Assembly (NCBI GenBank): GCA_020536535.1
Contig: JAHLWZ010000384.1
Coordinates: forward strand, 1 to 32,105
Origin: Pelomyxa schiedti
Taxonomy: Eukaryota; Protista; Evosea
Reading direction: 5' to 3'
DNA length: 32,105 bases
Shown here: one piece after another, positions 16,794-21,400 of the stretch
How the letters are laid out: the number at the start of each line of letters is the position of its first letter
How positions within the stretch are numbered: the stretch's first letter is position 1
Translations under genes and position numbers: made by a program
The notes under the pieces: generated by a model
Seen by the model: only the letters and a program-made list of their open reading frames with translations
The model's database searches: none
What the model was told of the DNA's origin: nothing

Positions 16794-18375
16794 ATGTTTT
16801 TTGCAGGAGCGGGGACAGGAGCGCAGTCGCCATACAACGTACACGGGGACGCAGAGTTCCCAAACCCACCAACTGACGGCGTGTCCGCGTTATCGTGGTC
16901 GCCAACTGCTAACGTCGTAATCGCCACCTCCTGGGACAAGACTGCCAGGTGCTACGAGGTTGCCTTCTTTTTTCCTCTATTAAAATATATGCATTGGAGT
17001 GATTTGCTTTTTTTTATTTATGTAAAATTTTACTATTTATTTATGGCTTTTGGATCAACTGAATTGTGTAGATAACTCCACCTGCACCTGGGGCTACCCC
17101 GTATAGAGCTACCGCGGCGGCACGACTGCAGACTACCTCTGACGCCCCACTGTTGACTGCGGCTTGGTGTAATGACGGAATACGGGCCATCATTGCTGGT
17201 TGCAACAATAAGGCCATGTTGTGGAATTTACAGGTGAATGTCCTTCATTAATCTCAGTACATACTTACTTGTGCCCCGCATTGGCATTCAGTCCCAGCAA
17301 GTTACACCCATAGCACAGCATGAAGCTCCAATCAAGTACGCGTTTTGGATGACACAGCATCAGATATGTGGAACAGCATCTTGGGTATCCTCTTCCAGGG
17401 GAAATTTGGTTTCTATGAAACTTATAATTTATAGGACAGGTCTGTGAGATTCTGGGACACAAGAGCACAACAACCAACATTCCAAATGACACTTCCCGAG
17501 CGTTGTTATTGGGGTGATCACAGCCACGCAGGTGTGTTGAATCTGACTCTGTCAACACTAACCTCCCGGCTCAGAGTTTTTCCTTCTGGCCACAGCCGAT
17601 AAAAAGGTTCTCGTATTTGATACAAGAAACCCCGCAACTCCCATGAAAACGGTTGAGAGCCCACTGAAGTTCCAGACGAGATGTGTTTGCAGTTTTAATT
17701 TCGGCGGCCATGCAGGGTATGGTAACACTTGTACGAACATACACTCACTGTAGCAGGTTTGTCATTGGTTCAATTGAGGGAAGATGCGGTATTCACTATA
17801 TCAATGACACTGATAAAGATATGAACTTCACTTTCAAGTGCCACCGGGACGGCAACAATATATCCTTGATTTTGCCAAATAGAGCTGGGAATTTTTCTTG
17901 ACTCACCTCCTTTTCACACACCTTTGCAGTCAATGAGATATCTTTCCACCCACAGTTCGGAACTTTTGCTACATGTGGAGCTGACGGAACTATTAACTTC
18001 TGGGACAAAGTGCGTAAATTCGACTCTTATATCAAAGCTGACATCCCTGCGTAATTTACAGGATTCGCGTCAGAGGCTGAAGGGGTTCCCAACTTGTAAG
18101 ATGTCCATTCCCGTTGCAAAATTCAACAGAGATGGAACCGTAGGCCCACTTTCCTCCTTCACATGCAATTATTCTCACTGCAACTAGTTGTATGCCTACA
18201 GCATTGGATACGATTGGAGCAAGGGGCCAGAGTTCTACAAGCCCACAGACCCCAACCTGGTATACCCGGCCCTTATTCCTGTTCCTTCCCAACTCATCCT
18301 CGTATCCAGTTATTGGTTCACGCTACCCCCGAAGCCGAAATCAAAAACAAGCCCAGGACCGCAAAGAGAACTTGA
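16794..18375 (+). CDS. RAE1: mRNA export factor Rae1/Gle2 (WD40); multi-exon
   Basis: [102 protein letters not shown]. The YDWSKG and FTFKCHR motifs favour Rae1 over Bub3. Confidence 0.95.
17860..17919 (+). other. U12-type (minor spliceosome) AT-AC intron in RAE1
   Basis: 5' end ATATCCTT, branch-like TTTCTTGAC at about 17894-17902, 3' end CAC. It contains an in-frame TGA and no GT. Removal gives HRDGNN|[11 protein letters not shown]. Confidence 0.9.
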
Positions 18376-18423: not shown

Positions 18424-21400
18424 ATGAACGAATCGCCCGTTGTTGGCACGGCGGTGCATTGTTTCGTAATCGGGGGCGGTAGCGGTGGGCCCACGACCAC
18501 GACCACGTCCACGTGCTCGGGGTTCTTCGCGGCGCTCAAGGCCGCGGGGGCGCAGCCAATGGCATACAACGTCGGGGAGCCCAGCAAGTTCTCACCATCC
18601 ACTACGTCCCTGTACATGCGCATGAACATGGACACGGGCGGCGGCGGTGGTGGTGGTTGTTGGCCGGGGGGTGACCAGGCGGCCGCGGCTCCGGGGGTCC
18701 TGTTCCACCACGGTAGCGGCGGCACAGCGGGGGCCACACAGGGGGGCACAATGGAGGGCACAACGGGCGGCGCACAGGGGGGCATCGGCATCAACAACAA
18801 CAACGGGGTGATGGCCAGGATTAACATGCACGTCAGGTGGGTGGGTTATTGCTGTTGTTGTTGTTGTTGCTGCTGCGCGCTTGTGTGGATTCACTGAATG
18901 ATGAATGAATGAATGAATGAACGAACGACTAACTGAGTTGGTGTGAATAGGTCGGGAACAAGGAAGGTCGTGCTGGTGCTGTATTATACGAGTGACAAAC
19001 AGTCACTGTATTACGTTGGGAGCCACTTGCGCTACTTGCTGACTGAACCTTGGCCAACCGCTGTGAACTACGATTCTGCACTTAGGGATCAGTTCAAGCC
19101 AATCACTGCATCACCCCCAGTTGTTGTGGTAATGGCCCAGTGCCCAGCCGAGTGGATAGTTACAAAAAGCCCGGATGACACTGGAAAGGGAACAGATACG
19201 CCTGCTGCCGCACACAGCCTGGACATTATCTACTGGGCCTTTGTTGTATGTACTCGTTGATTGTTTCCGTATGAGTTTTGAACTCGCCGGTTCCTTCTAA
19301 CTTATGTTCCAGAGTTCGGCGGCCAGAGTGCTTACTGGGGAACAAACCGGTCTGCCGGAAATTTTATCACTGGTCATGGAGGCATCCAAGCAGGATGGCT
19401 TGGTGTACAAAAGCCATGACTTCATTCTCAAGGAGACACGGCACCCCACTGGTGGTGCACAACCAGTTCCTATCCCAAACAATCCTGCAGGGGCAAGTCC
19501 TGAGACTGCGCGCACTCTCCTGCAATGCATTCACGACCACAGGACTGTATTCCCTTGCCTCTCAGAATCCCTGGTTCTGAGGACTTGGGTGAGGGCAAAG
19601 AACTGGGCTGCCGTAACTGAAGTTTGCCGAGCATGCTGTATGACTGAGGGCCAGGAAATTGACCTGTCAAACCTCTCTTTGGATTCCGTTCCGGAGGCCC
19701 TGAGGGGTTTGACTTGCAAGAAGTTGGACCTCTCAAACAACAACATCTCAGTTGTGCCAAGGTGGATGGTTGATATGAAGAGTGCAGTCTTGACTCCAAA
19801 TCCATTGAAAGTACCACTGGGTGCAATGAAAGAATGCATGTATTTGGACCTGGGAAAGCTTGGAAATATTGTGGAAAGCCACATTCATAAGGTGGTGTTT
19901 ATTGGGGACACTGGTGCGGGAAAGACAACCCTGTTGAAGTGCATGATGGAAAAAAAGAAGAAGTTGCAAGTGGAACATTCGCACACTGGAATTGCTATTC
20001 ACCATAATGTCAAGTTCAAGAGTAAGGGAGTATGTTGGACTGTGTGGGATCTTGGTGTGCCAGCTCCTGAGAGTTTTTAATTTCACCTAAATGCTTACTA
20101 ACCAGGAGGAGATTCGTTGTCACCATTTCACTGGATGTTTCTTCGCAGCAGGTCCATATTTGTGCTTGTATTCGACATCAGAAAGGTAGCAGATGGGTCC
20201 AGGCTATACTACTGGCTGAACCAAATTGCTTCCGCTCAAGGTCCAATATTAGAGAGAAAGAGTCGAAGTGTGATCCTGGTTGGAACTCACCTCGACGGCA
20301 TGGACCCTATTACAGCCCAGTCTACACTCCAACGCCTGTTTCATGGTGCATTTCAGAACACTACATTCTTGATCAACCTCAGAATTGGCAAGGGGTTGAA
20401 GAATGAGGGAACCACCTTGTTAGAGTGTCACAATCCTATTACAAGCATTGTTCACCATTTGGAAGCAGTGAGCAACAGTGACGGGATACTTACAGCAGTG
20501 CCACAAAGCTGGATAAGACTGCACAACAAAATGAATAAATTGAGGAACAAGCTGCCTGCATCCAGGATTAGGTGGTCAAGTTTATGCAATATTGCCAGGA
20601 AAGTCGGTGTTGTAAGGGACATGGAGCAGTGTGCTAATTACTTATTTGACATTGGAACAATTATTCATTTCCGGACTCCATACCCTTTTTCCTCTGACAT
20701 TTCTTTGGCACTGGAAATGAAAATGGCGGAGCAGTTGATAATGGACCCTCAGCTTCTTTTTCAAGCCTTAATCGATGATATTTCCCAGCTTTCAATGGTT
20801 TCTTCTGGTTTTGAGTGGATGACATTTCCGTATGAACTCGTGTGGAAGCTAATATTTCCCCATGAGAAAAAGGAGGTCTCGGTTCTGTTTTGCTACTCCT
20901 TATTCCCCCTGGAGAATATAGATTGGGATAGAGTCGTTTTCAAAGACTCCCACGAATCGTGGATGGCCTTCTGGGCTCCACCACCAGAAGCCAGGGAATT
21001 CTTTGCCATGAACGGGAGGTCTATCAAGCTCTCTTTGCTCTCCACTGAGCTGTTCTTTAAGTTTGTAACACAAGTATCAACTCTTCCTGGCTTGAGACTG
21101 CACCAAGAATCAACACTGTGGAGAGACTGCGCAATGATATCATGCGAGTCAAATACCGAGGAATCATCAATGCTATTACTAATTACACGCCAAGATGATA
21201 CCCTGTCCATGTGCATGCGGGCTACAGGCAAAGAGCATTCCGAGATATTGGCACAGAGGAGGATGTGGTTATGTGTTATGGATGTCTTCACACAGCTTGC
21301 TGAGTCAGCTGTGTGTAGGTCTGAGGGTGTGGTGTTGATTCCGTGGCTAAGGGATATGGATCAGTCATTCCCTTGTCCTCACTGCTTGTTTTCACTGCTC

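Follow-up and report, generated by a model that had tools for sequence, protein, structure and literature searches.

The window, a stretch of 32,105 nucleotides of DNA from Pelomyxa schiedti, contains a gene whose coding sequence is interrupted by a short segment starting with AT and ending with AC. This locus raises the question whether the segment is an intron and, if it is, which spliceosome removes it. A sequence-only reading had taken the segment for an obligatory U12-type intron in RAE1, and had proposed that the organism, judged to be a probable archamoeba (P. schiedti is one), has kept the minor spliceosome. The 60 nucleotides are present in the DNA and missing from spliced RNA, and the junction has exactly AT..AC ends. 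Considering the sequence, the RNA contigs and the snRNA genes together, we estimate the probability that this is a genuine AT-AC intron of P. schiedti RAE1, with predicted U12 dependence, at about 95%.

The exon joins of the gene (Table 1) were read from assembled RNA contigs, and a calculation for each exon gave the phases and the overall length. Searches of the translated exons against PDB were performed exon by exon. With exon 6 (query 17758-17859) the sole matches were chains of human RAE1 ("mRNA export factor"; 3mmy_A, residues 231-263, E 2e-7). Exon 7 matched residues 274-302 of 3mmy_A amid many generic WD40 matches, and exon 9, which carries YDWSKG, matched residues 330-349. For two of these three exons RAE1 chains were the only PDB matches at an E-value of 0.01 or below, and all three were colinear with human RAE1, including FKCHR and YDWSKG. 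Judged by this colinear likeness to solved RAE1 structures, the gene is identified as that of the mRNA export factor RAE1/Gle2. The exon matches to 3mmy_A and the sequence itself thus bear out that the segment interrupts RAE1. The further claim that it splits a conserved Rae1 motif was right as to the conserved region only: FKCHR and xFAVN are connected by a surface loop whose length varies, with about 7 more residues in human RAE1, and it is in this loop that the intron lies, so no invariant motif is divided.

Two observations concern the surroundings of the intron. Intron 3 of the same gene (17385-17434) opens with GTATCCTC, which agrees with the U12-type 5' consensus at 7 of 8 positions; it has no convincing branch motif and is probably U2-type. 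The downstream gene (18424-20080) encodes leucine-rich repeats and a Ras-like P-loop (GDTGAGKT), an arrangement of the Roco type.

Table 1. Location of the RAE1 gene, its AT-AC intron and related features. Positions without a prefix refer to the window; joins at the exons marked "shifted" were shifted to canonical ends.
Feature	Location	Strand	Basis or remarks
RAE1/Gle2-like WD40 gene	16794-18375	+	ATG at 16794, stop codon ends at 18375; 10 exons, 9 introns; 1068-nt CDS (355 codons + stop)
RAE1 exon 1	16794-16958	+	RNA contigs, shifted
RAE1 exon 2	17072-17233	+	RNA contigs, shifted
RAE1 exon 3	17292-17384	+	RNA contigs, shifted
RAE1 exon 4	17435-17531	+	RNA contigs, shifted
RAE1 exon 5	17575-17716	+	RNA contigs, shifted
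RAE1 exon 6, ends ...FKCHRDGNN	17757-17859	+	PDB match, RNA contigs, phase computation
AT-AC intron, predicted U12-type, 60 nt, phase 0	17860-17919	+	RNA contigs X3 and X4, sequence
5' splice site ATATCCTT, perfect U12-type consensus	17860-17867	+	Complementary to AAAAGGG at the U11 5' end
Branch-site motif TTTCTTGAC	17894-17902	+	Inferred branch A at 17901; hand-aligned to U12
In-frame TGA within the intron	17899-17901	+	Frame of the upstream exon
RAE1 exon 7, ends ...FWDK	17920-18009	+	PDB match, RNA contigs, phase computation
RAE1 exon 8	18062-18139	+	RNA contigs, shifted
RAE1 intron 8, GT-AG, 48 nt	18140-18187	+	RNA contigs; same position as AT-AC intron in RAE1-like paralogue
RAE1 exon 9, with YDWSKG	18188-18259	+	RNA contigs, shifted
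RAE1 exon 10	18310-18375	+	RNA contigs, shifted
Second RAE1-like gene	L027:1190-1600 (G000:C847, about 38356-38766)		Divergent copy
GT-AG intron of the second gene, 41 nt	L027:1292-1332		Position of the AT-AC intron of the window (FKCHR loop)
Candidate AT-AC intron of the second gene, 53 nt	L027:1501-1553		ATATCCTT and TGTCCTTAAC; position of GT-AG intron 8 of the window
U6atac, single gene	L003:1501-1619 (G000:C841:53279-53397)		62.7 bits
Candidate U11/U12-25K (SNRNP25) gene	L058:1471-1850 (G000:C265, about 34781-35160)	-	PF18036 on two colinear exons

At the 5' boundary of the segment the reading frame ...FKCHRDGNN runs into ATATCCTTGATT, and the conserved protein sequence picks up again at 17920. 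The TGA that had been noticed within the segment is in frame with the upstream exon, and because of it retention of the intron would lead to a truncated protein. It had also been stated that the segment lacks GT; in fact no GT dinucleotide occurs from 17840 to 17928. The U12-type consensus elements were located as described: the 5' splice site is perfect, and the branch-site motif agrees with TTCCTTRAC at 8 of 9 positions. The intron terminates in CAC, and the inferred branch point A17901 lies 18 nt before its last base, a distance at the long end among the U12-type candidates of this genome. In the 32-kb window RTATCCTT occurs once against 1.39 matches expected by chance; the count of the motif is not significant, and the evidence lies in its placement exactly at the end of the exon.

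Other splice sites were considered by hand. Use of the upstream GT at 17838 was rejected, since CHRDGNN would be lost and, in addition, the frame would be shifted or the TGA kept. The AG at 17928-17929 was rejected as 3' end because it would create a 70-nt intron and a frameshift. As read from the sequence, no GT-AG or GC-AG alternative would preserve the conserved protein, and AT-AG was likewise rejected.

If the intron is U12-dependent, the genome should be considered for the components of the minor spliceosome. The assembly searched comprises 52,367,397 bases in 5337 contigs, with a BUSCO completeness of about 82%. Full-length genes with an Sm site were found for U11 (67.5 bits, Rfam gathering score 39), U12 (58.2 bits, gathering score 53) and U6atac (62.7 bits, gathering score 33), the last also having a 3' run of T. 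The U11 RNA starts with UAAAAGGGU, which, as worked out by hand, can pair with positions 4-8 of the 5' splice site. In a hand alignment the U12 segment GAGUAAGGAAAA forms 12 pairs with intron positions 17892-17904, two of them G-U, with A17901 bulged. The recognition sequences of U11 and U12 thus appear canonical and, by these alignments, complementary to the RAE1 AT-AC intron. A second U12-like copy (L002:1501-1637; G000:C859:7899-8035) scored 41.1 bits, below the gathering score. Compared with the main U12, this copy is nearly the same in the 5' half but lacks most of the 3' stem-loop, and it probably represents a variant or pseudogene.

The snRNA survey suggested in the sequence-only reading succeeded for U11, U12 and U6atac, not for U4atac. 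No U4atac candidate was obtained in the assembly with the Rfam model (E up to 10) or with two hand-made patterns built on the U6atac pairing regions and the Sm site. U4atac is thus missing from the search results; given a heuristic search and an assembly with a BUSCO completeness of about 82%, its absence from the genome does not follow.

The AAGGA box of U6atac is the partner of the minor 5' splice site. The sole U6atac of P. schiedti reads GAGCCGAGAGA where the Rfam consensus has GAAAGGAGAGA, so that GCCGA replaces the AAGGA box; meanwhile, ATATCCTT is retained at the 5' splice sites of the genome. A search of the assembly for a further U6atac carrying the canonical box found none; there, the AGAGA-GGTTAGCA core had one exact match and the matches with one mismatch were not snRNA-like. 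Five metagenome contigs carrying an animal-type U6atac (AAGG) have GAAAGGAGAGA at the position of the divergent box. One of these contigs (L054) looks mammalian and is possibly human.

Among the minor-specific proteins, SNRNP25 had been named as one to look for, and a six-frame search detected an SNRNP25-type ubiquitin-like domain (PF18036, Ubiquitin_4) with 34.2 bits, where the cut-off is 22.8. The match falls on a candidate gene in which a pair of exons has its ISW-KYVW motif split by a GT-AG intron. Single exon pieces score below the Pfam cut-off, and the assignment is supported by the 34.2-bit six-frame match; against PDB the SNRNP25-like exon gave only a non-significant match (1v2y_A, E 0.55). 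Six-frame searches gave no match to PDCD7 (PF16021) or zf-U11-48K (PF05253). With exons of about 30 residues and a BUSCO completeness of about 82% these searches were weak, and on account of the very short exons the null results are uninformative. The three snRNAs above their gathering scores, the SNRNP25-type domain and the spliced AT-AC intron agree with the proposal that the host keeps U11/U12 splicing.

The genome was also scanned for the paired motifs RTATCCTT and TYCTTRAC separated by a gap of 10-40 nt, with the reversed pattern as control. The pair was found 32 times, compared to 10 in the control; 25 of the sites were AT-type and seven GT-type. Several of these candidates interrupt recognisable kinase activation loops and an AAA-ATPase, and an AC mostly follows 5-10 nt past the branch motif. 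A few of the 32 sites are duplicate loci. In two cases (L025/L029 and L030/L034) the intron and its flanks are identical on separate contigs, which probably reflects contig duplication or haplotigs in the single-cell assembly.

From these elements a conventional pathway can be proposed for the RAE1 intron. U11 would base-pair with ATATCCTT, U12 would pair with TTTCTTGAC leaving A17901 bulged as the branch point, and a U4atac/U6atac.U5 tri-snRNP would finish catalysis as in other eukaryotes. The intron might instead be excised by the major (U2-type) spliceosome. U2-type AT-AC introns are a rare class known from animals, the spliceosome is not defined by the termini alone, U4atac was not found, and the 5'-splice-site box of U6atac is off consensus. 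Against excision by the major spliceosome stand the perfect ATATCCTT 5' site, the extensive pairing of the branch motif with the U12 of the same genome, the genome-wide co-enrichment of 5' and branch motifs and the intact U11, U12 and U6atac genes. With this evidence we consider removal by the U2-type machinery very improbable and prefer U12-dependent splicing.

The junction between 17859 and 17920, the RNA signature by which the proposed AT-AC splicing was to be recognised, was seen in two assembled RNA contigs. Both are Logan contigs; they derive from single-cell transcriptomes (two runs, X3 and X4) that were made from one sample in the study that also produced the genome. One contig of each run joins 17859 to 17920 with no mismatches, skipping 60 nt with AT..AC ends. 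In the X3 contig all eight GT-AG introns of RAE1 are removed as well; the X4 contig begins in exon 2, and the seven GT-AG introns downstream of its start are removed. In the one DNA run the RAE1 locus is unspliced and the segment is kept. A junction shifted by 1 nt (TA..CA) fits the RNA contigs equally well; such ends are non-canonical. The assembled contigs demonstrate that the spliced form exists. That the junction is an artefact (template switching by reverse transcriptase, wrongly assembled RNA contigs or an allele that lacks the 60 nt) is suggested by the use of assembled contigs rather than raw reads and by the single sample behind both runs, but it is next to negligible because the two sides of the joint have only 1 nt in common and offer no repeat for template switching, canonical GT-AG introns are removed in the same contigs, joining the two sides brings back both the reading frame and the alignment to RAE1, and the ends of the segment carry the full U12 consensus.

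The assembly contains another RAE1-like gene, which has diverged from this one. Its exons are colinear with those of the RAE1 gene in the window, with 58-66% identity in exons 6-7, and one of them matched residues 273-328 of 3mmy_A (E 2e-15). At the position of the AT-AC intron of the window this gene has a GT-AG intron. Conversely, before LxAYxIGYDW, where the gene in the window has GT-AG intron 8, the paralogue has a candidate AT-AC intron. Both common positions are phase 0, and the two RAE1 copies align there without gaps; the paralogue has no intron after FWDK. By sequence comparison, the U12 and U2 types are thus exchanged between the two copies at two common intron positions. In the usual model conversion is one-way, from U12 to U2. 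On that model the ancestral RAE1 gene would have had two U12 introns, a different one of which was converted in each copy.

Minor splicing in P. schiedti as such is already known. Larue and Roy (2023) reported 90 minor introns in the species, counted from deposited annotations (PMC10639083), and the RAE1 intron is a well-supported instance. A literature search for RAE1 as a minor-intron gene returned nothing relevant. The genome, obtained together with single-cell transcriptomes from micromanipulated cells, was described as 52.4 Mb in 5337 scaffolds, and its annotated introns as GT-AG (98.41%), GC-AG (1.59%) and one GT-GG (PMC8887013). The RAE1 AT-AC intron therefore cannot be in that annotation, in line with the warning that prediction restricted to GT-AG would mis-model the gene. 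Since the annotation has no AT-AC introns, the RAE1 intron and other ATATCCTT candidates may lie outside the published 90. The swapped RAE1 introns, the U6atac box and the lack of AT-AC introns in the annotation suggest, tentatively and with the odds against it, that the minor system of Pelomyxa exceeds what the published 90 would imply in its size, in its wealth of AT-AC introns and in how unusual its mechanism is.

The practical value of the finding lies mainly in annotation: RAE1, and probably dozens more genes, need AT-AC introns to be allowed. For research on minor-intron turnover, small leads come from the swapped paralogue introns and from the divergent box of U6atac. An archamoeba with minor splicing that is backed by RNA at one locus also bears on the number of losses in Amoebozoa. 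Minor snRNAs and minor-specific proteins were reported absent from Mastigamoeba balamuthi and Entamoeba (PMC8136499). PMC8887013 refers to Panek et al. 2016, in whose title Entamoebidae is called a deep lineage of Archamoebae. If this is so and Pelomyxa groups with Mastigamoeba, the losses in Mastigamoeba and in Entamoeba would be separate; minor splicing would then have been lost independently in the two, as far as the cited topology holds.

Compared with the report of Larue and Roy (PMC10639083), the species and the intron class are alike, and their count is annotation-based. The RAE1 intron resembles the U12-type AT-AC introns of animals, plants, Acanthamoeba and Physarum in its ATATCCTT 5' site, its TTCCTTRAC-like branch motif near the 3' end and its AT-AC termini. 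As in known U12 systems, the host is an old, conserved housekeeping gene, and the U11 and U12 recognition sequences are canonical. Unlike known U12 introns it is very short (60 nt), as are the introns of this genome, and its branch motif differs from the consensus at position 3, where T stands for C and gives a G-U pair. The Pelomyxa U6atac, without the AAGGA box, also sets this system apart from the known ones. In Physarum the branch motif has become TTTGA, and U12 has changed to compensate (10.1101/2020.10.12.336362), whereas the classical branch motif is kept in Pelomyxa. In contrast to Mastigamoeba and Entamoeba, which are likewise Archamoebae, Pelomyxa has kept U11, U12, U6atac and spliced AT-AC introns.
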